Shown piece after piece: positions 2,504 to 62,183 of a stretch of 64,000 nt of DNA (its first letter is position 1; each line of letters opens with the position of its first letter). This stretch comes from Paraphysomonas bandaiensis (lineage: Eukaryota > Protista > Chrysophyceae). A model generated the notes under the pieces. It had not been told where the DNA came from and did not search any database. It worked only from the letters and a program-made list of their open reading frames with translations. The translations under genes and the position numbers were made by a program. Location of the stretch: assembly GCA_965644295.1 (NCBI GenBank), contig CBFFRP010000431.1:124001-188000 (forward strand), written 5' to 3'.

Positions 2504-4871
2504 TCACAACTGAGAAGTATTAGTACAACGTACCTCACTTTCTTCCCATAAATTGTTGGATGAGCTCTTCACACTAACACTCACATCATCAGCGAACAAC
2601 GGACGCTCAACAATGAGGTCCGCAGATTTTAGAAGTTCTGTTCCTCCCTTTGTGGAAGTAGGAACGGAGGGGGCTCTTGCCTCTAGTACACCCACTTGAG
2701 GAGATACTCCTGCATTTAGCATGCTTTCGGTTAAAAATATGATGCAGATATTCCTTTTCATACCTGTCTTGTTTTTTCGATGTTTCGTGAAAAGTTGGAA
2801 GTCGAACAAGCTTGGGGCTTCCATTTCTAAACGCGAGGTGCTTTTAGGTAATGCTATCTCTTCACTTCCATCATTTTCAGTGAACGTGCTAGCTTGGGTT
2901 CTGGACACTGTAGGAGAGCTACAGATGCTATCATCCAGACGGTCGGGATCGCACATACTCAACCCTTCAGATTCCTCACATCCTGAGCTGTACCGTACAC
3001 AGCCGCTGCTTTCATCGCCCCTACAATCTTTTTCACTTATATCTAACATTACTGGAGGAAATGACTTCTGTCCGTCAGCTTTGACATTCACTTCAACGGG
3101 CCCCTCCGCTCTCCCCACTTGGCCATCCGTAATATCTCCCGATGTCGGAGCAGCAGGAGGCAGAGAAGATGCTGCCTTCAGTGTCCGTACCTCCTCTCTT
3201 AAAGCCTCTACCTCTCTTTCTAATTCCGCAATGCGCGATTGTTGCGATGTGTGTACCGCTATGGGAACACAAGCACCCTCTCCATGGTCTTCACTTACAT
3301 TTCCTTTGCCACCACTACGAGCCCCATCGGAATCTACACTCTCACGCAGCTCAGCCATTGATTCCATAGAATGTCTAGGGCCAATCAATGACGAAAAGCA
3401 GAGGTCTCTCGGTTGTGGCGTATCTGCCGCGGACGTCTCACACACACTTGAGTGGTCATTTGTCAATATCGGTACCTCTCGTCGTTGTCTTTGGGGAGCA
3501 GAGGAGAGTACACGATAACTAGGAGATTCCCCTACAGTCGCGACTGTAGGGCTAAGACTAGAAGGAGATCTATCATAGCGCCTTGATGAATAGCTGTTTT
3601 CAAAGGCAGCAATTGCCTTGAATTTACACACAACGGACTCAGCAACACCCGGTCCAGCATTGTTATGTGCCATCAAATCAGTCATACATTCGAGGCCAAC
3701 GCATGCTCCTCTCCCGTCCCCACCATTTCCATTCATATTAGACACTTCATAAAAAAAAACACCATAGTTTGTAAATACTCCCAGTAGAAATACCCCAGTG
3801 TCTGTCCACACCCTCTCTAAGACATGTTCGCTCTTCAAAAACCTGATACAAGCGCCCCACACCAGGGGGTTCCGAGGAATAGAAGTGGGATCCGGATCAG
3901 TCAAACTAGTTGATGGAGGTCGTACCCACGCACCGACGACAGGAGTCGACATAGTAGATGTGCTTCGGCTGTCCCACTCAAGGAGTGGAACGGCTCTCCT
4001 GGCTGCAGTCAGTGTCAGATATCCCATACAGTGTGGGAGTGGACCTGGTGTAGAGTTCATCAGGGCGACGGCAAGTGGGGTAGACTCAATCGGAAGTGCT
4101 GGTATCTGTACCAAACGCAGAGTGGCATTAGGAAGAGTAGCTTCCAATCGTAACGTTACTCCTGATGAAGTTGAGCGCAGACGGCCAGCTGCTCTTATCC
4201 GCACACATGATCGTAAATTAAACTCACGTGCTAGTCGCAGCCCTTTGTCAAGGTTTTCCACTAGATTTCTGAACAGGGTTATAAGCAAATTCCCAACAAA
4301 CTAGTTCTACAATCCTACCTGGTACGCTGTTCATCAAATGCGAGAGATGGGTCATCAGTGCTCCGCATAGAAAGAGGTATCCGGAGTGTGCAATTAGACT
4401 CTGTCTTTGGTACTCCGGCATCCCCTGAGCTAACGCGAACTACTTCCAGACCGTATTGCTCTGGCACAGATTTCAGCGTTGACCAGTGATTGACTGGCAA
4501 TCTGTGACGCTCTAGCACAGTCATATTGCTCACAAGGTTTACTAAGCACTCTATGTCACCGTAATTGTTGGCCTGAGTAACGAAATCGTGAACAATATGC
4601 GGAGCTATATATAGATAGGGCAGCACATCAGAGGGATGTAAATAAAATATTTTACTGCACACTGATCGATTCCTACAAGAAGTAATGTAAAATATATGAT
4701 TAGAATAACGTATATACCATACCATAGTTTGGAGCGGTATTGAGGGAATGATATACGATTGCTATGACGAGATATGACAGGGTCTCTGCTCTCTTGCTTC
4801 TCAATGACAGTTGAATCCTCCTCTGAGAAGTAAGAGGATTTTTGCCGATTATTAGTTGTTTTATTTTGCAT
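2504..4871 (-). CDS. STIL: STIL (SCL-interrupting locus)-like centriolar protein with STIL N-terminal domain and coiled coil; multi-exon, 3' end uncertain
   Basis: The spliced N-terminus FPQYRSKLWNRSVCSKIFYLHP and the blocks IPALPIESTPLAVAL, GYLTLTAARRAVPLLEWD, PVVGAWV and NPLVWGACIRFL..VLERVW..GVFLL..FYEV parallel metazoan STIL_N (GYLTMDETRKLLLL..D, PLVGIW, PQVWACCLRY, ERVF, FYE). Coiled coil RIAELEREVEALREEVRTLK. Introns near 4672-4722 and 4270-4319. Confidence 0.75.
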
Positions 4872-16700: not shown

Positions 16701-19700
16701 TGCACGATTCATTGCCGTTGTGGCCTTCTGCGCCTTCAGAGAGTCCGCAGTGGGAGCAGAGAGGACGTCAATAAAAAGAAAATCCACCAATAGATTCACG
16801 GGCGCTACGAAAATAAATAAGTATTGTACATCATGTGAACAAGAAACCCCACGAAAAATAAAATGCACTCACGATACCAACACTTACCTGTAAACATGGC
16901 AACTACTGTTGATATGATTACCACGGCCTGACACACAATCAATACAATCACAATATCACAAAGAATTGTCAGTTACCTTGACGGTGAGAGCGACACTGTC
17001 CTCGTCGTATACACAGGCATAGCCACCTGTGTTATCTGGATCCTCCACATACGTCCACTCACACATTGGCTTATCGGAGTCAAATGGTGACCTTTGCGAA
17101 AGACACCTCTGCTCAGTGTCGTATCCAGCACATGTACCGTCATCTACTGGATACTGCGATAATTGCAATTATCCAAAGTATAAGTACATCAAAGGTACAC
17201 AGAATGCAATATATGCAAATAATAAAAGAAACATGCATAATAAATGCTATACTCATACAACTCACACCTGAACATCATAACATAAGGCCAGCATGAACAT
17301 CAGCATGCTTTGAATAGTCAGCAAGTGAACACCAGTCAGCATGCGCACGTTGTCAGCATTCGGACCGCTTGCTGTAAACAGTACAATATACCGATGATGC
17401 TTACGAATTTCTCTCCAAAAACGATTCCAAGTCGATTCTGTGTGGTATACAGCCGGAAATATTTCGTTAACATACGTAATCAAATAAGCCTTAATATCCT
17501 CTGGCGATTTGGAACCCTTGGCCATCGTCTTTTTCTTGCTCAACAGGGAGCTCATTTCTACGTTGGTCTGCCCATACCCTCTGATACGCCTCCAGGAACA
17601 GAGAGATATGCCTAGCAAACCACCAGCCCACAAAAACCCATACAGTAGTATAATGATCATGGTATCTTCAATATCTTGCAAAGAGTTTAAACCATCGGCA
17701 GCTTGTATCGTATCGCCGAAATCCTCGACAATAATCGTGGACACTGCTACTACTTCCAATGCGCCAGATTCTTCAATAAAATTGCCGGTAATCTGGCTTA
17801 CACGCTGTCGCGGGACATACGACAGGCGCACGCACTCACACATTGTCGTTCGCTCTGTGTAGGAAATCACAGTGCAATTGAAATCCGACCCACTGAGGAC
17901 TCTGCAGCCTGGGGAGGTCGTCACACTCGGACAACGGGTCTCAATATAGGCCCCGGTGCCGTTGCACTTGTGGGTAATCATGATATCGCCTACCGGCCCA
18001 CCAGGACAAGTGTGCGAATAGATGTTCAGGTCCCCTTCTTCACATGTCGTGTTCACAGATCTATCACTGGGAAGTACAACATAGCTCTGAGGGCCCATGT
18101 TCTGTATTACTAATGAAATCACCGGAATGTCTTCATGTACCGTTTGGTCTACAAATTTCACACGTATTGCATTGGAAGTGAATTCACTGGGGTCGTCGTA
18201 CAGTTTCGATTTTATGGACATAGCCACAAACTCCTGCTTTGACTTTGTGGAGTTATGCAAGGTAACAGTTGTTGGATATGCATTAGATGCTTGTTCCAAC
18301 GGTGTTTGCGGTAGTGTGAGTTCATTGCTCGTACTAATAAACGGGGAAAACACCTGGGCTTTCAAGCGAAACATACTATTAATACTGTCTATTGGGTCTT
18401 GTCCGTCAACCATTTCCGACGCAACAAGAGTCCCAAACGCATCCAACACACTGATTGATTCTAATAACTCTGACAACTGACGACGCGTTGAATTTGACAC
18501 AGTGGACACGGACGAAGCCAAAGCAGCCGCATCCACAGCATTCAACACATGCAAAAGACTATCATACGACATTTCGTACGTACCAGCATTGCGCACAATT
18601 AATGACGATACTTCCAGAGCGATCTCAGATGCATCGGGTGATAATTCATCAGGAGATTGTGTCAATGACGTTAAACTGGACTGCCATGCAACTATACTGT
18701 CTTCACTTGGTTCGTCTGAATGTGCCACAGACTGTAGTCCCTGCAGCAGCTGAAGTCGTAGTGCTCGTTTTTCAGCCATTAGTTCGGAGCTAACAGAACA
18801 TACGCTACCACTGAACCCCTCATTGCACTCACACACGGCTTCGCATGAGGAGTCAGAAAGTGCACAAAACTTCACAGCTTTCCCTGAATTAGATTGACGA
18901 ATAGTGCAGACACCATTACCCGAACAGTTCTGACTGCATTCTTTAGACATCGGTATGCACATACTACTCGTGGTATTACACCGAGTCCATCCAGTACAGT
19001 CGGAGTCGACAGTGCACATTGCCGTCGCGGAGTCCCCAGTCGAATCCAAAGAAAGGACATCACCATACAGACAAGGTGTGTTGTCGTCTCCTTCTGCTCC
19101 AACATAGCCGGCTAGACAGTGACCACAAGTATGATCCCTATCGGAGCATTCTGCACGGAATAACAATGAACAATTCGGTGCATTTGAACAGTCCCGGACA
19201 TTCATCATAGAGCTTACTACAGCGAGTACCTCCTTTACGCCATCAATATTTCCATGTGTAATATCTAGTTCAGAGGACAGTTTCGACTGCAATGCAGACG
19301 GCGATATATCCAGTTCATCAACAACGACTGTTGTTTCCACGGTGGAAACTGCACTTAGCGCATCATACACTTGCACAACGCACACAACTTCATATCCTTT
19401 GCTGACATGTCCAACAGGCAATGATGATGTACTATACGCTGCTTCCGACCGTCCTCGCACGATTCCTAAACCCGTGCTCTGTACATATCCGAATTGGTAC
19501 GACATTGGTACATCATCATCGCTCCAGCGGGATGCAGAGAAAATGAATTTTGTTTTTAGTGCTGTGCCGTTCCTCGGTGTGACCACAAACTGGCCAAGTA
19601 AAGGGGCACTATTGACAACAATTTGTACAGAAGCTTTACTATCCCATGCTTTCAATGTGAAAGTGTATGGTAGTGTTCGACCTAATAAACTTGACCCCCT

Positions 19701-22700
19701 GATCACGAGATTGACTGGATGGTCGCCCGGAGGAAGCGTTTTGAAAATATCAATACGACTGATGGCTGCCAGGTCAATTGAATCATCGTCCACCGTCCAC
19801 GAAACATTGGCACTGCTGAATAGTTGAACCGATCCTTTCACAATGATGTCACGAACTGGGTTGACCTTTTCGGATAATTTTCCGTATGATATTGATGTTA
19901 TTGGAGAGGACGGTTTCGTCACAGTTACTTGTACGGCACTCTTTGATTCTCGAAATGCGTCAGAAACAGTTAGCGTGAATACTTGGACAGAATTAACACT
20001 CGAGGCAGCTGCTGGTACAACTACAGCATACGATCCATTAAATTCCGCATTAACTCCACATAAAGAAGACAACTGAGGTTTTATTTGATAGCACGTCCAC
20101 GAGAAGTTTAATTTAGCTGAATCCTGCGTTTGTACATCGGAATCGTAGCTATCTGTCCCGTCTAGAAGTAGAGATTCCCCGAGACGCACAGACTGTTCTG
20201 AGCCCCCGTGCACAATGGCAACCAGATCGTTGCGAAGAACTGCGACTTGTACACTCGCTGTGGCATACAGTCCCGACACCGTACTAGTAGCTGTAACTGA
20301 AAACTCATATACAGAATTCGGTACTAAGGAATACGGCGGCAGCTTGAATTTCGACTTCGCAATCGCAATGGACCACACCGAGCTGTCCACTACATCATCT
20401 CTGTATACCTTCCATGAATAAGATATATCTGAGTATGAAATCGTACCATCGCACTTCGGCGTGTATGCTTGAGTATCCAGAAGGAACATTTTGTCAGCTG
20501 TCATAGACCGCAACTGTGGCCCCAATATCGATACAACAGGTACTACATTGTTGCTTACTTGCAACTGATGTGTAGCCAATGAACACGACCCCATGAAGTT
20601 ACATAGTGTCACATAGAAATCATAATAGTATCCTGCTATCAAGTAATCATGAGGAATTGGGGTTGGAGGACTTAGCACATAGGTCGACGCGAAAAATGAC
20701 GTTATATCAGCAGCGCTCTCGGTATGTGTACTCTCGACAACAACAGAAAACGACGCCCAGTTCCGACCACCATTTCCGGTAGAGGATGACAAGTCCAGGA
20801 CAGGATTGTCACAAGGCCCAGTAACTGAAGGACCTGATATAGCTACCATAGGGGCCTGTGGTGTGAGTGGCGGAAGGACTTTCACTGGTTCATTAGAAAC
20901 AGAATTCCATGTCAAACATTGTTCGCGAGACAGCTTGCAAAACGCTCGCAAAGAGTCCTGAACAACCGAGATATTACTTCCCACTTCTATACCACTGGCT
21001 CCCCCTAATACCATTCTCACTTTCACCGAGCTAACCCATTCGCAACTTGCAGCGTCGCTGCCATCAAACTCAAACAGCTTTGAGCAAGTATACACATTAG
21101 AAATATATCCTCTGTCCGTAGGGGAGTCGAATGTTGCAGTGATAGATACACCATCCGATGAAAAACGCGCACTCCTGAGTATTGGTGTAGCACTTTCAAC
21201 ATTTGAGTGTTGTACGGTGAATGTATCGCCATCAGGGTATCGTACTTCGTAATTGGACGCATCTGGGCCACTTAAAGTGTGTAACAATTTATATTCACCC
21301 GGCTCGCTTCCAGACAATGCAACTACCTGACTCCTTGACCACGTTTTCGAGTTTAGAACTATATTTGATGGAAAAAATGGTTCAACGCTAACAACAGTCC
21401 CTGTATCAGTTGTATGTTGCGCAAACAACTGGACAGTGACTTCATATAACGGTGCAGCATTAGTTGTCACAGTCATGATATCTATGACATCAGTGCCTTC
21501 CTGAAACGATATCCCGACAAGATTAACTGATATCTCCTTACAGCAACCAGTCAATATGGTGTGCCTTGAGTGAAAAATACTAGCATCACTACTTGTTACA
21601 CCATATACACTACTAGCCGCGCAGTACAGGTCATATGGAGTCGCTGGTTGCAAGTCATGTATAGTAAGTGTCACTGGTGACAAGTCCGCTGATACCACAG
21701 CAAAAACGTTTTGAACAAAAATAGCTTTCGTCGATGATGGCATTGAGGACATCGGGTATGCTGCGCAGTATAATTTCCCGGCCTTCGACAAAATCCCAGT
21801 TACTGACACAGCAGAAGATGTGGACGTGTAAGAAAGAGATAAAATTTCTGGTGCAGGGGAGTGAGATGGAGCAAAAGTGGGAGTCGAACTAGGGTGACAA
21901 GTACTCGGCGCTGAGGAAGGAGAAGCTGACGGAAGCGTACTTGGCAAAGGAGTCGGATTACTAGAAGGCCTTGTTGTTTCACCATTCTGAGTAGGGTTGA
22001 AACTAGGCTCACCGGTTGGTCGTCTAGTAGGCCCTTCAGTGGGAATTGTAGTCGGTTGCCCAGTCGGAATACACGAAGGCTCTCCAGTAGGTTGGCTAGT
22101 AGGAATATCTGTTGGCTGACCAGAAGGCATGCCACTAGGAAGGGCTGTTGGTATACCTGTAGGCCCAACCGTGGGATGCCCTGTTGGTTGCCGGGTCGGG
22201 TATGAGGAAGGCAGCGCACTCGGCACACATGTTGGAACAGCTGTTGGTTGTCCAGTAGGGCGACAGCTTGGCAAACTCGACGGTTGTCTGCTAGGTAGTC
22301 CAGAAGGCAGACTTGTTGGTAAAGCTGTTGGTTGGTCACTTGGTTGATTGGTAGGTTGGCTTGTAGGTAGACCTCTTGGTTGATTAGAGGGCCCACCAGT
22401 TGGAAAAGCAGTTGGTTGACCAGATGGTCGACAAGAGGGTTGACCACTTGGCACAGCAGACGGTTGACCGCTTGGCTGACTTGTCGGTTGACTAGAGGGT
22501 ATACTTGAGGGATGACTTGTGGGAACAACAGTAGGTTGATCGCTGGGTTGACTAGTTGGCTGGCTGGAGGGAACACTAGAGGGTTGACCACTTGGCACTG
22601 CAGACGGTTGACCGCTTGGTTGACTTGTCGGTTGGCTTGTGGGTTGAATGGAAGGTTGTCCTGTTGGTTGACTGGAGGGTATACTTGAGGGCTGACTTGT

Positions 22701-24497
22701 GGGTACAATAGTCGGTTGACCGCTGGGTTGACTAGTCGGTTGACCGGAAGGTAACCCAGATGGCTGACTAGTTGGCTGGCTGGAGGGAACACTAGAAGGT
22801 TGACCACTTGGCACTGCAGACGGTTGACCGCTTGGTTGACTTGTCGGTTGGCTTGTGGGTTGAATGGAAGGATGTCCTGTTGGTTGACTGGAGGGTATAC
22901 TGGAGGGTTGACTAGTCGGTTGACCGGAAGGTAGTCCAGATGGCTGACTAGTTGGCTGGCTGGAGGGAACACTAGAAGGTTGACCACTTGGCACTGCAGA
23001 CGGTTGACCGCTTGGTTGACTTGTCGGTTGGCTTGTGGGTTGTATGGAAGGTTGTCCTGTTGGTTGACTGGATGGCACAATAGAGGGCTTACCAGAAGGT
23101 TGCCCAGAGGGTAGGCTAGTAGGTTGTGTAGGTTGCCCTGATGGCTGTCCAGAGGGCTGTCCAGAGGGTAGTCCAGTTGGCACCGTCGTAGGGTATGAAG
23201 TGGGCTCACTAGACGGTTGGCCGCTTGGTCGAGTTGTGGGGTTAGCGGAGGGTTGTCCAGAGGGCAGTCCAGTTGGCACCGTCGTAGGGTATGAAGTAGG
23301 CTCGCTTGACGGTTGGCCACTTGGTCGAGTTGTGGGATCAGCAGTGGGTTGTCCAGTGGGTTCGCTTGACGGTTGCCCACTTGGTCGAGTTGTGGGATCA
23401 GCAGTGGGCTGTCCAGTGGGTTGACCACTTGGACTACTAGTTGGCTGTCCGGAAGGCTGCCCGGTAGGCTGTGTTGGAATGCTTGTTGGAATTTGTGACG
23501 GCTGTGTGGACGGCTTGCTGCTAGGCTGAGCAGTGGGCTGCCCCGTTGGCTGAACTGATGGTCGGCTGGAGGTAGGTACAGCAGTTGGTGACACCGACAA
23601 TGGCGTAGCTTCACAGGCATAAATTTTACTGTCAGTACAGTCCATTTTATCCCATGTATTATCTTTTTTTAATTTAATACAGTCTTTGCCACTGTCATCA
23701 GAGAACCCGCTTTTAAAATTACTGTAACCTGAAATATCTGTTCCATCATCCCAAATGTAGGTTCCTTCGTTGTCAATATCAGTGAGGCCAATGTACATGT
23801 CTTCACGTGCAGCACTACCACAGGTGCCTTCTTCACCAGTCAGTGCAGTCAAAAAAGCATTCATTTCATCTGCTGAATTTATTGACACCATATACCCCCC
23901 TAGGTTAGAACACGTTGAATGTATTGCGGCATACGTATCAGCTGAAGTGCTGATATAGTAGCAGTAGATATCATATGCATTAAACGACGCCGGGCAAACA
24001 ACTGAGGCTGGCGCAGGAGTAGGTGAAAACACACAACCTGCCACTACTTCTGCCTCACACACATATCCTTTGGTTTTTGTGCAAGTCTCATCGTCCCACT
24101 GGTTATCGCTTTTAAATTTCGCGCAATTTTTCGAGTCGTCATTTCCCGGACTCCCGCCTTTCCAGTTAGTGTAGCTACCAGTGCCCGATCCATCGTCCCA
24201 TATCCAGGTACCTTCAGTCGCGCTGTCTGTATAACCAATAAACATATCACCCCTGTTGCCTACACAATTCAGAGCAGAAACCATGGCAGTTTGTTCAGTG
24301 GAAGTGCCAATGGAAGCCATATAGCCTCCCCGGCTAATACACTCATTTCGTGCATCAGCATATGATAATTCGTTAATACTAATGTAGTAACAATAATTAG
24401 TGGTGTATGTATAAAACCCTGAAGGGCAACAAATAGATTGAATCTCCGGCACAATGACAAACAATACACATAATACAACTATAAAATTATTTCTCAT
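13754..24497 (-). CDS. Giant polycystin-1-like surface protein: signal peptide, 2 C-type lectin domains, Pro/Ser/Thr (PT) repeat stalk, PKD/REJ module, EGF-like Cys-rich region, GPS-like motif, multiple TM segments, acidic C-tail; multi-exon
   Basis: First exon of 2411 codons. Two CTLDs (C..GG.MASI, FIG.TD..EGTW.W.DG, WDD..C). REJ hallmarks (LVAIVHGG..SV....LLLDGTDSYDSD, VNSAP..G.F.VTP..GTAL.T.F..A..WSDDD.P.SYQF). EGF CSGNGVC. GPS-like C..NCTVISYTERTTMCEC. Downstream TM-encoding exons 13754-17170 on the same strand with splice sites. Confidence 0.82.
21860..23590 (-). repeat. Coding tandem repeat: PxxQ (PSGQ/PTSQ/PSSQ) tetrapeptide array with higher-order DNA duplications of about 60-240 bp
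   Basis: Block IQPTSQPTSQPSGQPSAVPSGQPSSVPSSQPTSQPS recurs three times (about 22550-23050) almost identically at DNA level. ADPTTRPSGQPSSEPT occurs twice. Confidence 0.95.
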
Positions 24498-25249: not shown

Positions 25250-27231
25250 ATGATCATTCCAAAGGCCTTTAATCCGAGAAGGCGATCTATTGTACCAGAG
25301 GGACTTGGACCCCGTGAAGCTGGATCGAAGGTTCTTCCGTTTGATAGCATTCGAAGTCATTTCAAAGGCGGGATACTAACACTAACTATAGTCCAAGGCG
25401 AAAAGTTATATGGATCCGGTAAAGTGTTTGGGAAGGGTAAATATTCAGCTTGTGCAGTGGTGAAATGTGGTGATGTCGAGCTAGGACGATCCAACATTGA
25501 GCGGGGCATGCTAAGTTTTGCTAATCGTAAGTGGAGTTGGTTGGGGTTTGAGTCCAGTTTTAAGCCGATGATGGTGTCTCCTTCTTTTACTCCTGTCATT
25601 AAAGTTGTAATATATGACTGTGATAGAGATGAAGAATCACTTCCATTAGGTGAAGTTCAAATCGGTCTTCAACATATCAAGACGAATGAGGAGTATATAT
25701 GTGAGCTGCCAATCGAAAGGATTAATAATTTTGGGGTTCCTGCAGCTCAAGGTATTCTTAAAGCACGTGTACGTTTTGCTCCATTTGATTCGAAACCACT
25801 AAAAGAAAATAGTCAGATAGCTATTGATTCAATTGTTTCTAAGAATATATCTTTTGGTGTTGGATGGGATACGGATGTACCTAACTCCAGTTATGCTTTT
25901 GGGGCATCTTTAGTAATCTTCGACTCCAGCGGAGCCTATATAGAAGATATTGACAGTGAACGCAAGCAGAGCGACAAAGGAATTCCTGTCGAGTTCAAGC
26001 GAGTAAGTCGCGACGATGGATTTTTGTCTGACAAGGAAGAGATATGCTTCGATGTTAGCAATTCTGTTGCCCAAAATATTACTGCCTATTTTTTGGTTCT
26101 TACTGCAACTGATGTAGCCTACACTCTTCAGCAAATTAAGAACGTGTACTGTCGTGTTTTTGATTACACGACAAAGGTAGAGTGTTGTCGATATGAGGTT
26201 GAGTTCATGGAACCAGCCACATCGTGTGTGCTAGCAAGAATACATTGGGACACAACAACTAAGGTATGACACTACGATATTTGTTTTTTATTAATAAGTA
26301 TTTCTGATATCCGTTATCACAGAAGTGGTGCGTGTCTGCTTACCGCGCACTAAGCTATGGGGCTCGTTCTGTTGGTTTTCTTATTCCTAACATGAAAGAC
26401 ATGCTGTCAGATATTATCCCGGGATGTCGAGGCTCTCCTACTGATCGCCTAATCTCTCTTTCCAGAGGGGACTCAGTTGCGTTGCGTGATATGTATGAAT
26501 CTTTTACTGGCGAGGTGACGTATGCAGTTAACTGGTATTCCGATGAAGGTAGAGGGGTTGATTTAGATACGGGATGTATATTGGTGTCCGCTGAAGGAGA
26601 TATTTTAGATTGTGTGAGTTTCGAGAAGCTGAAATCAGATTGTGGCAACGTCATTCATTCTGGCGATTCTAAACAAGAAGGAACAGAAGAGATTCAATTG
26701 TTTCTTGAGAAACTTGGCTCTGGAGTTTGCTACTTGGCATTTTATGTCATATGTTACGAGGAAAAGCCACTGTCAAGTGTAGAAAAATGTGTGGTGGAGT
26801 TGAGGGACTCAGCAACTGACCGCGTGTTAATATATGACAAACGTGGAACCCGTTCCTGTGGAAAGTCTGCATGCTTAATGAGTGTTATATTTCGGTATAA
26901 TTCCCAGTGGTATTACTTGAATTCTTCAAATGAGGCTACGGGACGTACTGTACAAGATAATACCACACATTTGAAGCAGTATATAGCAACTGCCAAATTG
27001 CTGGAGGCGCAAGCTGCCACGAGTTCTAGTGTGGCTCTTAATTCGTCAACATCAACTGCTTCTGCGGAAATCGAGAGCGAGAGTTGCAATGAATGTAATG
27101 TAACCTCCAGCAGTGTATGTAAGGTTATAGTTGAAAGTGTTGTGGGCGGCAATGAACAGAATTTAGACTTAACTGATGACGAGATTGAAGCCCCTGAAGA
27201 GTACGAAATTCGAACCGCTGAAGCTTTGTAG
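25250..27231 (+). CDS. C2 domain + two TerD-family domains, 2 exons
   Basis: C2: GILTLTIVQGEKL..IKVVIYDCD..PLGEVQIGL. TerD1: ISFGVGWD..ASLVIFD..DKEEI. TerD2: VNW..VDLDTGCILV...DCVSFEKLKS..GNVIHSGD..GTEEIQLFLEKL. Intron 26264-26322 in frame. Confidence 0.75.
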
Positions 27232-36045: not shown

Positions 36046-39000
36046 TCACCACTTCTTAGATTTATATCGAATCGCTTTGGCCGTAATACCCATCAATTTA
36101 ATATGCTCTCGATGAACTTCATTTGAACACAGTGTCCGTAGTGTCTCTGCTGCCGCATCTCGACTTGATTTCGTTCCACTTTCTAGCTCGTGTGCTAGTA
36201 GCGATACTGCATCAGATCGCATGATGGCAGCAGCATTTCCGGGATCTACAGCCAGGTTTCGCAATGTTCCACAGGCTTCTTCTTTAGCGGATGCACCTCC
36301 AGTGCGCAAAACTTGCAATAAATGTTCCAAAGCACCAGCATAAATCACGGCGTATTGATTTTCTTCGTGTTTGTACGAAATGTTTTGAAGAACTCCTGCA
36401 GCAACTGCACGGCAAGTATCATTATCGTACTGAAGCATCTCAATCAGCATCTCAATTCCGCCAGCTTTCGCAATCGCTGCTTTGTTCTCATGTGAATTGA
36501 ATGCTAAATTTCGCAACGCCCTTGCAGCCATAGTCTTGCAATTTATTGGAGAACATCGGAGAATATCAACTAATATTTCAATCGCTCCAGCCGCTGCAAT
36601 AGCAATGCGATTAGATTCGATACATGCCAGGCTCCTCAGGGCTCCTGCAGCCATCTCCTGACACCCATAGTTTCTCTCATTCAGCATATCTACAAGCGGT
36701 AAAATCACTCCTGCTTCTGCTAGCGTAATACTATTTCCATCTTCACCAGATAATATCCCAATGGTAGAAGCTGATGCCTCTCTGACCGCATCACTCTCAA
36801 GTGGTGATAACATTGAAACTAGGTGGGTAGATATTCCATAAGACATTATTTGTGATTTAACTAATTGACTCTCTCGTCCTAAATTTCGAAGAACTGCTAG
36901 GGCTGCAATTTTAGTTTCTGACGTACTCTCATCATCTAGATTACCAACAATATCAGAGACACAGTCTGACTCCAGGATAGCTTTGCGGTATTTCGACACC
37001 CGACAAAAATGACTCAATGAGATTACAGTATATTCACGGCAGTGAATCGATGGGTGAGATAATAATTTTATGAGCCTGTGTAGCACTCCAGCTGCCACCA
37101 GTTCTTCCTTATAATCTTTCTTGTGAAACGCTAGCTGTCTCACTACATCTACTGCAAATTCACAGCATATCTCATCCTCGTGATTCATCATGGCCACGAC
37201 AGGTGAAATCCCATTAGCTTTCACTATGCGAACACAGTTTTCGGCATCCTTAATGATCATCCGAATTATTCCGAGACATGAAGTGGCACACGTTGTGTCA
37301 GTCAATTCTTCCGTTGCGAGGGAGTGAACAGCAGCCACTACAATATCGGCCTCGATTAATCTATCTATATATTTTTCTCCAAGAAAGAAAAGAATGGCAG
37401 AGGCTTTGGATTTGCACTGTGCATTTCCCTCGTGAAGAAGCTGCACAAGAATAGACAACCCGTCGGCATTTGCAATGCGCTCAGCTGTTTCATCCACACT
37501 GGACAACACTTCCAGTATCGACAGCGCGAAGTAGACAGCATCACTGCCCGATAAATTAAGCAGTTTTACGAGTTTCGGAACCATGTCAGAATCAACGAAT
37601 ACATCTTGAACAGCTCTGCTTATAGTACGTTGGCATGACAGCACCTGATGCAATACTCTCAAAGTTGCCAAACGAATCTCACTATTTTCATTCTGTATCT
37701 GTGCGACAAGTTGAGATAACCCCCCCAGTGTGCATATGTTTATCGCATCTTGTTCAGAAAAATGAACACTCATCAATGACCGCGCAGCCATTAGCTGCGC
37801 TGAATGAGCATCGTTACTCAATATATCAACGAGATCACACCCAGCTTCTCGAAGTTCACTGTAAGTAAATCCTAAAGCTACCATTTCTTCTAACGAATGA
37901 CCGTTGAGCACACACTGGCTCGCAATTACACCGAGACATGTACCACATTCACGTAGTTCTGCTAGCGTAAAACCATGCTGATAGAGAAGTGCGGGTGCGT
38001 ACCCTAGACTTATCAACTCCCTTGCAGTAAAATTGCCCTCACGTAGTTGAGATATAGTAAAGCCGTATTCCTTTAATACCAGTGCGTCTAATCCTGCTTC
38101 TTTTAATCCATACAGCAAAGGAAGTTTAGAACTACTTTCGATCTTCTTCGTATTTGCATTGGATGTATCATCACAGTCGTTGATAAGAACACGTACTACT
38201 CCACGTATGGCCGAATCAATATTAGAAATATCAGCGTGAAGTCTACTCCTCTCATCGGCACATGATTCAGATATGCGTCCATCGGCCAAATATGTGTTCA
38301 AAGCTATCTTGAGCGTAGATTCTATTTCGTCCATCGGAAGCAACCGACTTAAACGAGTGAAAACAAACATTACCGTATGAGCAAGATCTGTGGCATCCCA
38401 CGTAATGGTGACTTCAGCATTACCACCTTGAAAGCTGTACCTCACATTCACTCCACCTTGACAATTGGGTACCCCAAGTTGCCTTAATATATAACTCCCA
38501 ATATCACTCGCCAATCCGCTTAACTTAGCCTTCATATGGGCATCAATAACTGCACTCATATACTCCAGCATCTCAATAAAGCGACCCAAACGAACGCTGG
38601 ATGTGTCTTCCATGAATAAGCTCTTAAGCGAAGATCCCCAAAACGATTTCGCTTTTTCAATACTGCTGCGGCACATATTGTCTATTGTTGTGCGCAAACG
38701 ATGCATGTACTCTTCAATATGATTCGCTGGATTTAAACACCCTGACACTTCCACATTTTTCACAGATGTGTCCAGTATACCATGCAGAAGTGGGTTTAAA
38801 ATATCCATGCTGTAAGTTTCCTGAATTTTTGAAAGACCTTTCCTCAAGCAGTCTTCAATAGCAGTCATTACTGCATTCTGTAAATCAAACACTACCTTCG
38901 TGAGAGTTACATCATCCATATCACTGCGAGGTAATATAGGCAGCCCAAGAGCACCGTTAGATATCAATAACTCCTCCTTCTTCCTCAGAAGTTGCTGCAA

Positions 39001-40696
39001 GGTTGCAGGGACCCAATTCTTGCTCATATAATCGAGATACATACGATTCAGCTTTCCAACCAAAGACGCTGTGCCCGCTGTACCAGAGGAGAGCAAGTCG
39101 CTACAACCGTTTCGCTTGAACCAAAGGGGCTCTGACCTGGCCTGACGAACAAGTCTTCCATAGTTAGATTGGTCTTTGGCGAATACGTCCATTCCGGAGG
39201 AGAGGTCATCATCAGGTGCCCCATATGAAGACTCTTCCAATCCATCTGTAAGAGCACTGATGTCATCGTCATTTTCACGTTCATTCACTTGACTTTCTTC
39301 CTCGTCGTGGGGATCATCCCCGGCATTCATTGTGCATACATATCCATGAGGATGAAGGGGAACTGAGCCGACAGAGACATCTTGCATGACACTTCGTCGA
39401 AGTTCACGTATCGCCTTACGACTGATGAGGTCGCATTTCGTAACCACCCCAATAGTACGTGCCTGAAATAGAATACATAAATTATTCTCTGTCGCAATAA
39501 ATATATTTATGTATATGTTTCAAGAAATATATTACACATGCGCGTGCTATGTTCTGGAAGTGCATTGCGTACAGAACAAGTATGAAACCACTGATAGGTG
39601 CCAGAAAAAATATGTACATGATAACATGTGTGGCACTTAAAAAACCCACATGTAGATCGTATTTCTGGACAAACTCCATGGCAGGGGAGCAGGAAAAGCG
39701 GGATCCCGCCTCCACCACAGCCAGAAACAGAGAGTTCGGATTAGATTCAATGTAATGTTCAACTATACACCTCGTATCGGTTGGCAAAGACCCTCCTGCA
39801 GCCACAATGCCAGGCAAATCAATGAGGTCTATGCTAGGTACGTTTGGTGAAGAAACATGCAGCATAAGGTATTGGTCCATACACACACCACCATGCTGAC
39901 CACATTGCTGCTGAATAATGCCAGACATCGCATACTTGACATCCACATGAGCAGCATCCATAGATGGAAGCACAGTAGTCGGCTCAATCTCTTCGTGAGT
40001 GGTTGAGTCCAGTACACTCAATGTCGGCATACAAGGCTCTTCAGCGTATCTTAACTGAACATGAATGGGCAGTCGTGTGCAAATATCCTCTCCACGCGGA
40101 AAGATGGACATCATAGCCAATCGCTCCAATATCGAACTTTTGCCGCTACTCTCGTTACCAATGACAGCCACCTTAGGTGGGTCCCATTTCGGCAATATGT
40201 CAGCTAATAAGGGGCCCAGGGAGTCCAGTTGTTTGAAGATATTACCTAAATATTTTACGGAGATGATTGGGTTTGAAATGTCCATGGTCATTTCGTGCTG
40301 AGGTCTATAAGAATCTAACTGCTTTGATATAGCTGCCAAACACCTGCCTATCTCCTCGTTATCTTGTAGACTAGACCCCATTCTTTCTCTAGTCCATGGA
40401 GATATAATCGGCTGCCCTTTCGATGTGCGATCTTCAAACCATGAAAGTATGGATTTTCTGGAGTATGTATGCCCATCTACATGTATGATATTAATGAAAA
40501 GATGACCTAAACAATAAGATGTAGGCATATATACATATATATACACATACATATATATAGATGCATATATACATATACTGTACATGCCTTCTGCTATGAC
40601 CGGATCCTCTAAGATTTCTTGCGAGATAACATCTATGAGCACAGCCGGTAGATCATAACTATCGCTTAGATCTTTCAATGAAAGAGCTCGAGGCAT
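36046..40696 (-). CDS. U-box + dynamin-family GTPase + 10-residue LxExGFT repeats + armadillo repeats, 3 exons (40588-40696, 39650-40476, 36046-39462)
   Basis: U-box: ISQEILEDPVIAEDGHTYSRKSILSWF..SPWTRE. Dynamin: G1 GNESSGKSS, G2 ICTRLP, G3 LIDLPG, G4 RTIGVVTKCD (restored by splicing). ARM repeats such as AAGALRSLA..NRIAIAAAGAIEILVDIL. Confidence 0.85.
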
Positions 40697-54723: not shown

Positions 54724-56077
54724 GATGTAATAGCAGTATTATTTAAATAATAAGAAAAAACAGAAGGAGAGAAGACGAGCATAATATTACAGAACAATGA
54801 GAAGGTCAAGTGAAACCAACGCAGCTTTGATCAGGGCAAAGCAAAATTTAGAAAACATAAAATTATATACACTATATATATATTATATATAGTAGTATAT
54901 AGACAGGACTCCATCATCCCTTAAGTAGGTATATAGACCCTTTGTTCTCTGAACAAAATATTCATGTACTTCCTCAAGTTCTCTTCGAATAAAATGTCTT
55001 AAAATCTTTCTGTCTGGGGGTTAATAGTTATTAGTTTCACATATAATTATATCAAATACAATTCACAGATACGACTACAACACGAAGCGACCTCACACAC
55101 ACAAAAAACAACATACTGAAAATGGTTGGTTACGATTCAAACCAAACCGCATCTTGAAATGATCTGCAGTTTGTTTGTACATCATTGCCGAAATAGTTTT
55201 GGACTGCACAAGATACTTCCTTCCCACCATACGCAGTATTACTGGCTCGGAGAGTATCTGAACAAACCTTCCAACATCAGTTAGTATATTCAACTATCGA
55301 AGGTTTGTAGTTACATTGTATAATAGTTTTATAGCTTACTACTCATGTGGAGTCCCCCAATCAGTTGCCCGAGGAAAAAGAGTTGATGAACGAGGTCGTC
55401 GAAAGCACTCCAGATACGGCATTAATATTGCGAGTTTAGACAAAGACGAAGATACTACCGATTCTGATGATTTCAGTTTCACGCCGCCAATGAAGAAACG
55501 GGGATTTCAGTGGCACAATATTGAAAATCGGGAAAAAAGACCTCGAAAGTATAGTACGAGGCCACAGCTGGCACAGCCCTTTACAGATGGAGTCGTCCGG
55601 CAGTGTATTATGCACATCGATTGTGAGCACTCTCCAACGGGAATTTTTACGAGCGAGTTACACATAGTGCCTCGCCGAATGTAAATGTACCCACAGTAAA
55701 GGGTACTTCCCCATTAATTATACATGAAGGGGATAAAAAGCTTTGAGGTGACCTGAAGCCCACTTCGTTTATAACTACTACAGGAGCCATGAGGACTACA
55801 AGAGCATTGCGCCCATAGTCACTCAAATTTCTAATGGAAAGAAGTTTTTAAACAAGAATACTTTTTAAATCGACACTGCCAAGCAGCTCCTGTTCTATCT
55901 GCAGTTAAAGACTGAAAGTATAAATTCTGCGTGAACAGACATACCATGTGAACTGAACAAGACATCTCTCATATAAATGGAATGCTACCAAGAACATTAT
56001 CAGTCTTAACCAGAAGTTAATCATACACTTATTAGTCAAGCATACGTACTTGCACTATACTATCAACCTTATAATCC

Positions 56078-59000
56078 TCATCGCAACAGCGCAACAGATG
56101 GTACCCCGTCAACCCCTTTCCACTCCTCGATATTCCTCATTATTTTTTTAGCATGAATATTTTTCGTCACGCCAATTTCCTTTATATCATCGATAGTTTC
56201 ACATAACGTCATCATTTCGCCATCAACACGATTCTTCTCGAAATCAGATACATACATTGATAAATCGATATATCTTAATAGGGAGCAGACCTCATCGACG
56301 GTTAAAGAAGTCAGTGTTCGAGTGCGCGGCTCTCCACCCACCACAGGAGTACTTAGTGCTGTCGTAGAAGTCAATTCATTAGGCTTCTCATTAACAGTAC
56401 TCTCTATACTGCTGCAATCATCCAGTTTTGCTACATCCGTTTCTATCTGTTGAAGAACCTCCACTACTTTTTTAGAAACAGCTGCCAACACCAAGGATGC
56501 GTCGACTACAATAGACCAAGTCAATATGCAAAGGTGTTGCAGAAGCCTCTTTACGATACCCTTAACAGACAGCTGCTGTACATCAGGTGGGATTTCAATA
56601 CCCTTATCTGCTAGCAGTCGTTTAGCTAAACCCAGCGTTGCATCAGGAATACACTCAGGAAGTGTATCAACAGTTTCTTCCTGAAACAAGTCACCGATAG
56701 TATTCGCCAGCTCGTTCCGCTGGCCAAATAGTATGGGAAGTACAATGCGGATTCTATGGCCAGATGCGTGACTACTATTGTGCGTAATGCACGCCAACAC
56801 AACTATCCATTCAAAAAGCAGATTATCTTCCACTGTGGGGTCATGTGTCTGCATCTTACACAGCGAATCCGAAGAAATTAGTGGCACCACGACATACGAG
56901 TTAATTATTGCGTGAACAAGATTCTTCAGAAAGTTCTCCCCCTCCCGCAGTCTTTGACAATCTAAGAATGTACTGACGGCTCGATGTGACGGAGCTAATG
57001 AATACAACGACATTCTATCAAATAAGCCTTGGGCAAATGTACTATCAAACTTTCCCCAACGATATGATATAAATATATCATATTTTTCTTGTGCCTTGAA
57101 TTGTGACAGCCAGCCACCATATCTAGTTGTAATGTCACTAAAGTCAAGAAGGCGACGTCCTCCCCCACCGCCATGTAACAAATTCAGCGCAGTGTGTTTC
57201 TGTACAGATTGTCTAACCTGCTTCAGGCGTATGAGAAGCACATTGCTGGTCGTGCCTTGGGTTGATGAATCAGAGTCAATGTACGGTAATACGGTCATAA
57301 ACAATAGGCATTTCATACACTCGGCAATTGTTTTTTCAATCTGACTCCTGAGTCGCTCATAGACTGCGACTGGACTCTCTCCCTCCACATCAACTCTCAC
57401 AGCATTTTCCCTGTTCATCAGCACAAGGCGGAAACACTGAGATCCAAAATATAATATGGCTTGATCTCGGCGTAAACCACTCAGATCTATTTCTACAGCT
57501 CCAACAGAGGTCTCCAGTGACCAGGAAACAGCTTTACAGATAAGGCGTTCAAATAAGCCATTCGGTAGAAATCCCATCTGACGACAGTCATCCCAGTTCA
57601 ATGTCGTTTGAGCTTGCAAATCCTTCGACGCAGTGAACACAAAATAAAACGTATGAAGCTTCTTTGCTTTCGTCCAGTTATCATCAGATAAAGGTACAGT
57701 ATCAACTGGAAGAAGCGCAGGAGCGAGATACTTTTTAGTCGATAAAGAGGAAGAATCATTAAGTACTGCACTAAAACTGTCAGCAGCGTCGTCGAAATGC
57801 CCGTCTGCTGAGTCGAGCAGAGGAACTAGTAGACCATACTTAACCATTAGTTGAACCAGCATTGCAGCATGCTGACGAACATCCTGCAAGAGAGCTATCA
57901 GCAGAGTACTCGATATCACACCAGATCGAACCATACGACCCCAGTCACTATTGTGCATTTTCTTTACTCTCTTGTGGACATCCAACGAATGGTATGTACT
58001 ATCAACACTGGTGGGTGCATGCTTGCAAATGACAACAGACGCAGGAGTTACAAAGTACTCAATAGGGTCCAATATAACAATATCTCTAAGACCTTCTTCC
58101 GCATGCCACATCACCATTCCCATTTCGTGCAAAAAATACAAAAACTTTGGCACGAAGGACATCTGTATATCGCAAGATAGACAAATTTTTTCAACCTCAA
58201 CATAATTCAGATATGATGATTTCTTCTCCTTCATTCTATCCAAAGCCTTGAGCCAACTGAGCGGCTGCTCAGCGTGTACATAGCTGGAATCATCTATGAC
58301 TTGTTCCACACATATCAAGAGTTTCTTTAATACCGGATCATCTCTACCAAGAGTGTTGTCGACTGGAAAAAAAAATAGATCTGTACAGCCATTGACTCCC
58401 AGCGCACCAGTGTTTTCAACCACGAATGGCCATGCAATACTACTACTAAACATGTCATAGAGAAGTGTCGATATACCTTCATGCTCGCTCACGTCATTTA
58501 TTTTATCTTTCCTTGTCCCAACAAGAAATATCGGTGCCACTGACCCTCCTTCTCCTTGTGTATGGACCACTATTGAGTTCATCCAAAATGTCATGTAATC
58601 CGTACATTCCTCTTTTTCTTTTTCATCGGCCCCGTTACATAGCCATTCCATATTAAACACAAGCAGATAAACTCCATACTTAGTGAGAAAAAGTGGATGA
58701 ATGACATTGAAAACAGACTGTCCACCAAAATCAAACACAGACATGATAACCTTCGAATCAGCTGTTTGAATACTATCTGCAACACATTTCATTACCAGCT
58801 CACTCTCCGGCACATTAGCAGGTTCTGGTGAGCGCCTTTCTTCCTCATCCTTCACCTCCGTTATATTAGGTTTAATAGCAGGCGTATCCAAACAATTTCG
58901 TTCAGCGGATGCAGCCCGTATGTCGGATACAACAGATTCTGGCAGTTGTTGAAGACATGGATTCTGATCATCTACACGTCCATTTACTTCAACTTCACCT

Positions 59001-60626
59001 GATGTATTCGTAAAATAGTCTTCAAACTGATAATCCGTCCCATCCACACACGCTTTTGCCTCTGAGAATGGAATGTCGATTGCAAATTCCATATCAGGGG
59101 CACTTTCTCGCTGCTGTCGCTCATCCATTACCATCATAGCAAGTGCTGCCTCTAGCTCTCTTTCTGGTTTCTTAAATTCATTCCAAATACCAGCACGCAT
59201 AGATGCATATTTCACATCGCAAGTGAACTGATTGATACCCACTGTAGAGCTAGTATCCTGAAAAGATTTTCCAACAATGCTGTTTGTAAGTGCAGTTTTC
59301 CCTGCCCTACCCTCACCGACGATCATAATTTTACTTCTTCCCCAAGGCTTCTTGCCTAATCCAAAGAATAATTAACAAAATAGATCACATCAACGATAGT
59401 TTACCTTTCTTAAAAGCATTCATAAGGTCAGTCTCAGTCAAATTCAGATCGTTTTGGGAGGAAATTAACTTGTTTACGTCTTGAGCATCATCTGACGACT
59501 TCTCTTCTGCCTCAGGGGACTCACTTTCCGGTTCCGTGTTCATTTTATCTTCAGGTATAGTCTTTTTTCCAGTGACATTGTACTTCTTCACGTCCTCTGG
59601 GGGTTCAAGTTTACTAACATTCACAAATAATTCTGTTCCCAATACATAGAGCCGGGGTGTATTTCTTATTCTTGTAGCGAAGTTATTTAGACCATTCTCA
59701 TCATAGCCGGGTAACTGAAACCCCAGTGTATAGCTACCCGCTTTCTCGCATATATTAATAACTAAACATGTTCCGAACGACGATTGCCGAACGCTTGTAG
59801 TATTCTGTAACAAGTATTATCTAGATACGATTCGGTATCATAAATATAGTACAGCTACGACATGTTGTGTTGACATGCATACACGCAATATAAATCGCAT
59901 ACTTACAATGAGAAAAAGGGGAACAGAAACGTTGTATTGAGGTAAAAGTAAGGCGTGCCATACCACCCTGTAGGTAGTAAAGATAAATACTCCGATACTC
60001 CCAGTACTATTCGACAAATTCGACGCCCCATCAATGCGTTCCAATATAACTTCCTTTTCTAGGAGTACTAGTTGCCGTTCTTTATCCACAAAATTCATAG
60101 AACGCATGATTACTTCTCGGTACAGGTGGGTTTTGTCATATGCTCTATTCATGCATTATGCTTTAGAAGTTAGATTGTCTTGAGATTACACGACTCACCG
60201 CACTGCCCTGATTGCATGATTCAGAGAGTCCGCATTTTCGTATCCATATTCAAATTCATATTTGCTAGTACCTCTATTGGCGCGAATACGAAATCTTTCA
60301 TTGGTCACTTGAACTGATACAATACATCCCAATCCTATACAGCAATTCGTTCGTGCTGAAGCACTACTTATAAAGATATATCGTAAAGATGTTACTTGTA
60401 GTTTTCCAGCACTGTTCCCTGATCTCAGGTCCTTCATACCATCAATAGTACCTGTCAGATGACATGTTATGTGTTACATATACGTATATATCAGATGATT
60501 CGTACTTATAAGAGTCTCTCCTTCACAGAGTGATAATACAGATGAGCTCTCATCAAATAATAACAACTTATCACGCATACTATCCTCATACTTCGATGAT
60601 TCCTCTTTACCGAATAACCCCAACAT
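56078..60626 (-). CDS. BBS5-Roc-COR-TIR-SAM fusion protein (Roco family), 5 exons (60506-60626, 60199-60451, 59907-60144, 59405-59804, 56078-59355)
   Basis: All four GT-AG introns keep frame. BBS5: GKLQVTSLR..IGLGCI, KYEFEY, RAYDKTHLYREVIMRS, QLVLL..E...I.G.SNLS..G.IGVFIFT.YRVVWHA..YNVSVP, RQSSFG.CLVI..GSYTLGF. Roc: KIMIVGEGRAGKT, STVG, VFDFGGQ, VGTRKD. COR: PLSWL, FLHEMG, IVILDP. TIR: YDIFISYRW, TFLD..L..G, NLLFEW. SAM: LTVDEV..LL..IDL..Y...F....VDG. Confidence 0.88.
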
Positions 60627-60722
60627 CTTACAAGAATAAGATGCAGATGGGTGCTAGATAATATGGTTACTAAGAGAGTTATACGTTACTTCGGACAGCT
60701 TGTACTGCTGTGTACATTTAGG

Positions 60723-61150
60723 TATGTATGTATGTATGTATGTATGTATGTATGTATGTATGTATGTATGTATGTATGTATGTATGTATGTATGTATGTA
60801 TGTATGTATGTATGTATGTATGTATGTATGTATGTATGTATGTATGTATGTATGTATGTATGTATGTATGTATGTATGTATGTATGTATGTATGTATGTA
60901 TGTATGTATGTATGTATGTATGTATGTATGTATGTATGTATGTATGTATGTATGTATGTATGTATGTATGTATGTATGTATGTATGTATGTATGTATGTA
61001 TGTATGTATGTATGTATGTATGTATGTATGTATGTATGTATGTATGTATGTATGTATGTATGTATGTATGTATGTATGTATGTATGTATGTATGTATGTA
61101 TGTATGTATGTATGTATGTATGTATGTATGTATGTATGTATGTATGTATG
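60723..61150. repeat. (TATG)n microsatellite, about 430 bp, perfect
   Basis: Uninterrupted tatg array. Confidence 0.98.
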
Positions 61151-61302: not shown

Positions 61303-62183
61303 ATGTACACATTCACTAAAATGGTGTGCGGGAAACCGTTCACAACCCGTGAATTCTATTCGATGTGTGTTTACGGCAACATCAGTGCAGATGTCCCTCA
61401 TATTCAACAAGAATCGAGTTGGGACTGTGGAGTTGCCTGTTTGCAGATGGTTTTAACATGGTCTCGTATATCTGACTGTGATACAGTAAGCAGTTTGTTA
61501 GAACTCAAATCTCATAACGACTGGAGCAAGCCACTGTGGACGATTGATATATTTTGCTTCTTAATGGAGAGTGGAGTGGATGCTACATTTTACACTCGTT
61601 TCCTGGGTACTGGCGCTCATCATCAGTCTATCGATTGGTACACGAAAAATATGGGTGACGACGATGTTCGCGTTCAAGAGTTATTTGATAAGGCGACCTC
61701 AAATTGTTGGCCTATAGAAAAGGTAGGGACTTTAGAATTGATTGTTAGTGTAGATCTGATTGTACACATATATTTTAGAGGCAGCTAGGTGTTGATGAGG
61801 TTGCTCGGAGGTTGGATGGTTCAACTGTCGCTATAGTCCTTGTCGATGCTAACATCTTAAATTCGTCAGCGAGGTATTAGAAAGTGCTTTATGTGTTGGT
61901 GTAACTTATTGTACTTTATTTGCGTGTGGTATAGTATTTCGTCTGAGGGGTATTCCGGACACTATGTGGTTCTCTATGGGTATAACTCTTTCACGGGATT
62001 ATTCACCTGTCTTGACCCTGCGAGGGCTTGCGGTAACTATGCATTCCCGTAACGCATTTCCTTCGCTCATATGTACTAATATCAGGAGTACGGTGGGTGT
62101 CAAGCGCACAGCTAGATGCTGCTCGGTGCCACGTTGGTACGGATGAAGATATTGTCTTTTGCCGCAGGCGTCCACTGTTGTAA
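61303..62183 (+). CDS. GUCD1/plant GC1-like ('guanylyl cyclase domain', papain/C39-like fold) protein, about 4 exons
   Basis: VPHIQQESSWDCGVACLQMVL, LWTIDI, IVLVDA, GYSGHYVVLYGY, LDPA and ARCHVGTDEDIVF match the GUCD1 pattern. Confidence 0.8.

Follow-up and report, generated by a model that had tools for sequence, protein, structure and literature searches.

The 64,000-nucleotide stretch of Paraphysomonas bandaiensis DNA analysed here (assembly GCA_965644295.1, contig CBFFRP010000431.1, positions 124,001 to 188,000 of the forward strand; hereafter the window, numbered from its first letter) carries on its minus strand, at 56078-60626, a gene whose product joins a module resembling BBS5 to a Roco GTPase, a TIR domain and a SAM domain. 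The coding region, stop codon included, is divided into five exons that add up to 4290 nt once joined and that translate into 1429 amino acids with a single stop at the end. Exon 1 (60506-60626) encodes residues 1-40 and ends in phase 1; it is preceded by a 5' untranslated region (UTR, 60627-60659) that contains no upstream ATG. Of the BBS5-like module, exon 2 (60199-60451) holds the first PH-like domain, exon 3 (59907-60144) the start of the second, and exon 4 (59405-59804) its end; exon 4 goes on with an acidic linker and the opening half, DLMNAFKKG, of a motif that precedes the Roc domain. Exon 5 (59355-56078) encodes, according to Pfam, the Roc, COR-A, COR-B, TIR and SAM domains. The four introns are all of the GT..AG type: intron 1 (60452-60505) and intron 2 (60145-60198) are 54 nt long, intron 3 (59805-59906) 102 nt, and intron 4 (59356-59404), the decisive junction between the BBS5-like and the Roco parts, 49 nt. 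Intron 4 is in phase 1 and sits inside the codon of Gly338, so that the junction reads AFKKG followed by KKPWGRSKIMIVGEGRAGKT. Its retention would lead, after 7 codons, to a stop at 59385 and to a product of 344 amino acids.

Splicing was assessed with assembled RNA contigs. The stretch is present in 20 public runs, and contigs of four of these (X8, X9, X12 and X17) were compared with it over 55800-60720. The contigs of X8 (5385 nt) and X9 (4510 nt), which come from different studies, extend from the 3' UTR to 60657-60659, where they end, and lack all four introns; the gaps read CT..AC on the plus strand, that is, GT..AG on the strand of the gene. X12, from a third study whose organism label is that of the assembly, bridges intron 4 and intron 2, while intron 1 is skipped in X17, which is a polyA metatranscriptome. 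Intron 4 is thus spliced out in three runs, which come from three cultures and three studies, and no contig retaining it was seen among those of the four runs. The join between the BBS5-like and the Roco parts is one expressed, spliced gene. A first-pass annotation, made from the letters of this DNA, had placed the four GT-AG introns where the RNA contigs now put them, had read the last junction as the spliced translation gives it, and had claimed an in-frame join from BBS5 to Roc-COR-TIR-SAM, naming RNA across 59356-59404 as a check; the 1429-residue open frame and the full-span contigs of X8 and X9 bear all of this out.

The position of intron 4 is informative in another respect, since it splits a motif that is conserved in the Roco family to which exon 5 belongs. 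This motif (D330-K346, 59330-59429) reads DLMNAFKKG before the intron and KKPWGRSK after it, and aligns, in a comparison with 37 relatives, with their Y[ML]KEAL.QGKKEW[RG]RSK. In full, the motif ahead of the P-loop is Y[ML]KEAL.QGKKEW[RG]RSKIMIVGEGRAGKT in the relatives, and its counterpart here is DLMNAFKKG continued by KKPWGRSKIMIVGEGRAGKT. Because exon 4 holds both the end of the second BBS5-like PH domain and the start of this Roco-family motif, the two parts are already joined in the DNA itself. Translation from the internal Met348 would drop the motif and leave three residues ahead of the P-loop glycine. The splitting of the motif by intron 4 makes it very unlikely, at the level of sequence, that the BBS5-like and Roco parts are separate genes.

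The BBS5-like module was compared with the Pfam profile of the family (PF07289, BBL5/BBS5; cut-off 23.8 bits, profile length 334), each exon piece being scanned singly. Exons 2, 3 and 4 match the profile colinearly over positions 39-276, each above the cut-off: exon 2 over 39-103 (32.6 bits, E 5.6e-08), exon 3 over 124-199 (79.5 bits, E 3.1e-22) and exon 4 over 203-276 (26.9 bits, E 3.1e-06). The C-terminal region of the profile (about 277-334) has no Pfam match in the fusion protein, which falls short of a full-length BBS5 in this respect. The organism possesses, in addition, a canonical BBS5 gene, found by searching the 62.6 Mb of the genome (669 contigs): this gene (G000:C80:137119-138429), modelled as five exons and 344 amino acids, matches the profile over its whole length (1-334) and scores far higher. 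The tandem PH-like core of the fused copy (residues 18-235, 59712-60575 with the introns within) is 33% identical to it (E 1e-41). At the 49 positions shared by at least 80% of 53 full-length BBS5 representatives, the canonical copy keeps all 49 residues and the fused copy 36; the positions lost by the latter cluster beyond about residue 240, in the part where the BBS5 C-terminal region has given way to an acidic linker. The two copies have no intron position in common. BBS1 and BBS9 were also found in the genome and, since both are present together with the canonical BBS5, the organism has a BBSome.

In a maximum-likelihood tree, the branch of the fused copy measures 3.58 substitutions per site as against 0.24 for the canonical one, which amounts to evolution about 15 times faster. 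The fused copy lies in a group of weak support (SH-aLRT 87) to which the canonical copy also belongs, and a lineage-specific duplication of BBS5 is a plausible origin for the module. Judged by alignment and tree, the N-terminal module is a BBS5-derived, fast-evolving paralogue and not the organism's BBS5 orthologue. The BBS5-like region had been described in the first-pass annotation as complete and divergent. The divergence holds, and shows as a long branch in a phylogeny, an analysis that it had proposed; completeness does not hold, the C-terminal part of the profile not being detectably conserved. The same annotation had suggested looking for a separate canonical BBS5, which the idea of a decoy, or of a paralogue, needs; the gene on C80 provides it.

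The remainder of the protein is a Roc-COR-TIR-SAM chassis. The Roc domain (58505-59332) scores 51.3 bits with PF08477 (cut-off 27), its fold matches those of Roco, LRRK1 and LRRK2, and its G1, G3 and G4 motifs are intact (P-loop GEGRAGKT, 59294-59317; DFGGQ, 58718-58732; TRKD, 58505-58516). It is interrupted by an insert of about 140 residues (58760-59200), common to the relatives, which corresponds to a gap between the Pfam stretches and is predicted to be disordered, with pLDDT below 50 at residues 86-198 of the exon 5 protein in the model. COR-A and COR-B (57206-58264) are borderline in Pfam, with 35.2 bits for a cut-off of 35.3 and 21.6 bits for a cut-off of 27, respectively. A model of the Roc-COR region (735 residues, based on an alignment of 32 sequences; pLDDT 74.8, pTM 0.74) matches the LRR-Roc-COR protein of C. 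tepidum (E 4.6e-18), the C. tepidum Roc-COR structure 3dpu, LRRK1, LRRK2 and M. barkeri Roco2. By modelled fold and by motifs, the product is a true Roco protein, for which a GTP cycle is predicted.

The TIR domain with its helical extension (56507-57085) was likewise identified by modelling. The C-terminal model (367 residues, pLDDT 84.2) matches in Foldseek the TIR domains of flax L6 and L7, RPS4, SNC1 and RUN1, as well as SARM1, and, over its last 70 residues, SAM domains. In P0001, the closest Roco relative, the TIR score exceeds the Pfam cut-off (29.8 vs 28 bits). The TIR motifs D.F.SYRW, F.D and DN..xEW are invariant across 31 relatives, including the putative catalytic glutamate, Glu1186 (codon 56810-56812, in DNLLFEW). 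When a profile of the TIR-SAM region of the family was compared with the PDB, the best matches were SARM1 chains (E about 1e-10), and the invariant glutamate fell on SARM1 E642. The C-terminal SAM domain (56111-56311) is recognized by PF00536 (43.2 bits, E 5e-11), matches the SARM1 SAM in the family profile comparison (E 1e-10), and is folded like the Shank2 SAM. On the strength of these models and matches the product is a true TIR-SAM protein, with a putative catalytic activity. Every domain that the first-pass annotation had listed for a Pfam-type search (BBS5, Roc, COR, TIR and SAM) was detected on the exon pieces, those of COR-A, COR-B and TIR lying under the cut-offs and being backed by the models.

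A search with the exon 5 protein retrieved 271 relatives at E <= 0.001, with identities of at most 46%. They come mostly from marine metagenomes and protist transcriptomes, the sole named organism being Ochromonadaceae sp. CCMP2298 (41-46% identity), and nearly all share the TIR region, including those that Pfam does not flag for TIR. The P-loop motif could be placed in 67 relatives, of which 26 (about 40%) have at least 120 residues ahead of it and 41 have a short N-terminus. The long N-termini are of very diverse kinds. Pfam identifies a near-complete actin followed by a coiled coil (380 bits), an Hsp70 (618 bits), four C2 domains, a Ras/Rab domain (180 bits), a partial kinesin motor (75 bits), a short UEV stretch barely above the cut-off (33 vs 27 bits) and a CDC48_N match below threshold; precomputed Pfam annotations add ANK, TPR, kinase, FYVE and WW modules. 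The actin fusion, on a 47.7-kb contig, and the Hsp70 fusion, on a 10.5-kb contig, are each encoded by one open reading frame (ORF) without a break. As judged from domain content, the family is a constant Roc-COR-TIR(-SAM) chassis with varied N-terminal modules, distributed in protists and marine metagenomes. The earlier suggestion that BBS5 replaces a repeat sensor fits this pattern, since relatives carry ANK, TPR, WD40, C2, actin, Hsp70, kinesin, Rab or UEV at the same position.

The 358-residue N-terminus of the closest Roco relative, P0001, shows no similarity to BBS5. A ciliary theme among the relatives was considered and rejected, the WDR35/IFT121-like match of P0002 (40 bits for a cut-off of 80) being generic WD40; matches to the dynein stalk were rejected as coiled coil. 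On one JGI contig (Ga0606094_0128, L017:1191-7980), a relative's actin-coiled-coil-Roc-COR-TIR gene lies directly 3' of a separate gene for a 349-residue actin, with an LRR protein on its other side.

Three members of the Roc-COR-TIR family, the fusion gene included, were found in the P. bandaiensis genome; the first-pass annotation had suggested a look for paralogues with different N-termini. In the second member (G000:C1:110828-114572; L014:1574-5572, minus strand), a Rab1-like domain is joined to Roc-COR-TIR in an open frame across GT-AG introns, the last of which is in phase 1. Its chassis (C1:110828-113704) has no ATG upstream of the conserved motif and is preceded by the Rab1-like exons. 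The nearest solved structures to the Rab1-like module are Rab1A and Rab1B, and its G domain reads WDTAGAE, with Ala replacing the catalytic Gln. The spliced model of this gene is 99.8% identical over 1246 residues to P0024, a 1314-residue ORF on a 4161-nt environmental contig; because of this match the Rab1-like paralogue is taken to be spliced and expressed, and the organism to express two members with different host-protein front ends. P0024 begins with three copies of the repeat SGRSRAPEPLLVPTADDG. The third member, on C239, appears to start about 50 residues ahead of the P-loop. A fusion intron shared by the BBS5-like and the Rab1-like gene, as a scar of exon shuffling, was considered and rejected: the two introns agree in phase (phase 1) and differ in their distance from the conserved Trp, which they precede by 4 and 19 codons. 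The genome contains, besides, at least 13 further TIR_2 loci within long open frames (C280:32850-33173 and C111:17249-17572, for example), a large number of TIR loci for a single-celled organism.

A second BBS5-Roco fusion did not emerge from the searches made for one. A phmmer search with exon 3 against 1.84 billion representatives gave, among the best 150 of 320 matches, none over 48% identity and no second fusion; the long BBS5-containing proteins among these 150 are bacterial repeat proteins or combine BBS5 with RING, metallo-beta-lactamase or TPR domains, and contain neither Roc, COR nor TIR. Two scans with exons 3 and 4 of metagenome contigs, among which records of this genome itself may be lacking, did not reveal a BBS5-Roco gene either. 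Literature searches for BBS5 with Roco, with TIR or in a domain fusion returned nothing relevant, and no paper or database protein was found that joins BBS5 to a signalling enzyme. The first-pass annotation had known of no description of this architecture, and these searches agree with it; proteins that combine Roco with TIR had been described before (PMC11378527; PMC9334734).

Further features of the window were noted. Between the 5' end of the fusion gene and its divergent neighbour lies a perfect (GTAT)107 microsatellite of 429 bp (60722-61150); the neighbour itself (61303-61785, plus strand) encodes a Guanylylate_cyc_2 domain (PF09778, E 9.6e-24). Further away are a STIL_N homologue (centriole assembly; 2507-4288, minus strand), an open frame of 2411 codons (17265-24497, minus strand) with two C-type lectin domains, PT repeats and REJ, an architecture like that of polycystin-1-like receptors, a TerD-domain protein (25250-26266, plus strand), and a minus-strand region (36049-40696) encoding Dynamin_N (39485-40696) and then decapeptide repeats and an ARM/HEAT array (36049-39447).

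What the fusion protein does can be approached from its layout. The 1429-residue chimera, with a BBS5-like input, a Roc-COR switch, a TIR output and a SAM domain, probably serves as a bait or sensor in cell-autonomous defence or regulated cell death. On the pattern established for Roco proteins, SARM1 and plant TIRs, the N-terminal module would be the input, which either binds a ligand or is itself the object of binding or modification by a foreign factor; Roc-COR would act as a nucleotide-dependent switch that alters conformation or oligomeric state; and TIR would be the output, as an NAD+-cleaving or signal-producing enzyme, with self-association of the SAM domains gathering the TIR domains as in SARM1. 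The BBS5-like module would thereby mimic a BBSome subunit, in parallel with the integrated domains of plant NLRs. The modules found in the relatives are housekeeping proteins, and proteins of such kinds are known targets of pathogen effectors; it is because of this, and because the BBS5 copy is fast-evolving, that the bait or sensor role is favoured. A wider hypothesis, which I put forward only tentatively, is that the family constitutes a class of marine-protist immune receptors in which whole host proteins (BBS5, Rab1, actin, Hsp70, kinesin, UEV, C2) are integrated as baits on a Roc-COR-TIR(-SAM) chassis, an independent invention, on a GTPase, of the principle of NLRs with integrated domains (NLR-ID). 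The BBS5 bait would then protect the BBSome, or traffic in cilia, from a factor of a virus or parasite, and the answer would be NAD+ depletion or TIR-made signals.

Several observations weigh against the bait or sensor role. The case for defence is one of analogy. Relaxed constraint, and not the diversification of a sensor, could explain the long branch of the fused copy, and an orthologous BBS5-Roco gene, which would have spoken for conservation over time, was found nowhere else in the searches described above. The N-terminal module is not obligatory in the family, since 41 of the 67 relatives have short N-termini. The Pfam TIR score of the fusion protein, 18.5 bits, is under the curated cut-offs. 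Finally, assembled contigs do not establish that any one molecule extends from exon 1 through exon 5, and minor isoforms, intron-retaining or internally initiated, are possible. This last point is also what can be said for two genes, a BBS5-like one ending at 59385 and a Roco one starting from the ATG at 59326, the joined form being a read-through or an assembly artefact: such minor isoforms are compatible with the contig data, the 344-residue product of intron 4 retention has the size of a BBS5, and the ATG does lie ahead of the P-loop. This reading, which the first-pass annotation had given as the one that would overturn its own, is largely refuted and hardly credible any more, given the removal of intron 4 in three runs with no retaining contig seen, the loss from a Met348 start of a conserved motif whose first half is exon 4 sequence, and the same layout in the sister gene, which matches a spliced ORF.

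The main rival to the bait or sensor role is that the pair of BBS5-like PH domains is a targeting device that brings the enzyme to the BBSome, to the flagellar base or to phosphoinositide membranes; the protein would then regulate ciliary or membrane signalling as a housekeeping function. Both PH-like domains retain the residues that define their fold, a BBSome is available for docking, the Rab1-like module of the sister paralogue is also a membrane-traffic protein, and Rabs recruit LRRK2, a Roco protein, to membranes (titles of PDB entries 8fo9 and 8vh5). I nevertheless regard this reading as rather unlikely: a 15-fold acceleration and the loss of the C-terminal region are unexpected if contacts with the BBSome had to stay, the output is a TIR with its catalytic Glu paired with a SAM, as known from SARM1 and immune TIRs, and actin or Hsp70, which occupy the same place in relatives, would be improbable address labels. 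The present data do not separate bait from targeting. Less probable still is a young, lineage-restricted fusion with a decaying BBS5-like part, in which the N-terminus would be a passenger and only Roc-COR-TIR-SAM would matter. A fusion of this kind is consistent with the very long branch, the lost C-terminal region, the many relatives that manage without a large N-terminal module, and the failure to find a second BBS5-Roco in the phmmer search or on metagenome contigs. However, some 1 kb of neutral sequence with four introns, at 33% identity, should show stops, frameshifts or broken splice sites. Despite 67% divergence, the 337-residue BBS5-like frame is open and its splice sites are intact, all four introns are accurately spliced, and the substitutions spare family-conserved positions of the PH core. 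The survival of frame, splice sites and PH-core residues argues for selection on the fold.

The gene matters whichever of these readings holds, as a case of BBS5 joined to a signalling enzyme in which the join is verified at the RNA level. If the N-terminal modules are baits, integrated-decoy immunity would have arisen a second time, independently, in this family of unicellular plankton, with a GTPase in place of a STAND ATPase, and the family would offer a handle on the host machineries that marine viruses and parasites attack. If they are address labels, the gene would tie a TIR enzyme and an LRRK-like switch to ciliary trafficking. Either way, with one gene, three family members in the genome and a clear catalytic residue, this makes a tractable case for studying how a Roco switch is coupled to its output.

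Known systems resemble the fusion protein in parts. BBS5 itself is a stand-alone subunit of the BBSome. The module shares with the canonical protein the colinear tandem PH-like domains detected above the Pfam cut-off at 33% identity; it differs in being joined to a Roco protein, in its non-conserved C-terminal region, in its very long branch and in its introns. Roc-COR and TIR occur in one polypeptide in a TPR-ROCO-TIR protein of the red alga Chondrus crispus and in ROCO-containing TIR proteins of Aplysia, which were proposed to be immune components (PMC11378527; PMC9334734). As described, those proteins carry TPR, LRR, Mbt, EF-hand or death domains, and neither BBS5 nor a C-terminal TIR-SAM is among the parts reported. 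The LRR-Roco proteins of brown algae (Ectocarpus and others), which are candidate pathogen receptors with diverse N-termini (PMC3341825; PMC11378527), are likewise stramenopile Roco proteins that vary at this end. Their diversity lies in exon-shuffled LRRs, without TIR or SAM, whereas in the present family whole unrelated proteins are swapped in.

SARM1/TIR-1 is an NADase of the layout ARM-SAM-SAM-TIR. Its SAM and TIR domains both align to the family TIR-SAM profile, with the invariant Glu on E642. The fusion protein has TIR followed by a single SAM, no ARM, and Roc-COR and a BBS5-like module upstream, and it is not a SARM1 orthologue. In plant NLRs with integrated domains (RRS1-WRKY, RGA5-HMA), a constant switch-plus-effector chassis bears copies of pathogen-targeted host proteins (PMC4246468). 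The likeness here extends to the TIR fold, which is closest to those of plant NLRs, and to the presence elsewhere in the genome of the host protein that the integrated domain copies, the canonical BBS5. The switch differs: NLRs use an NB-ARC STAND ATPase, the fusion protein a Roc-COR GTPase with no NB-ARC or NACHT, and the correspondence would be one of functional analogy only. As far as homology and domain order can tell, the fusion gene is neither a BBS5 orthologue nor a SARM1 orthologue nor an NLR.

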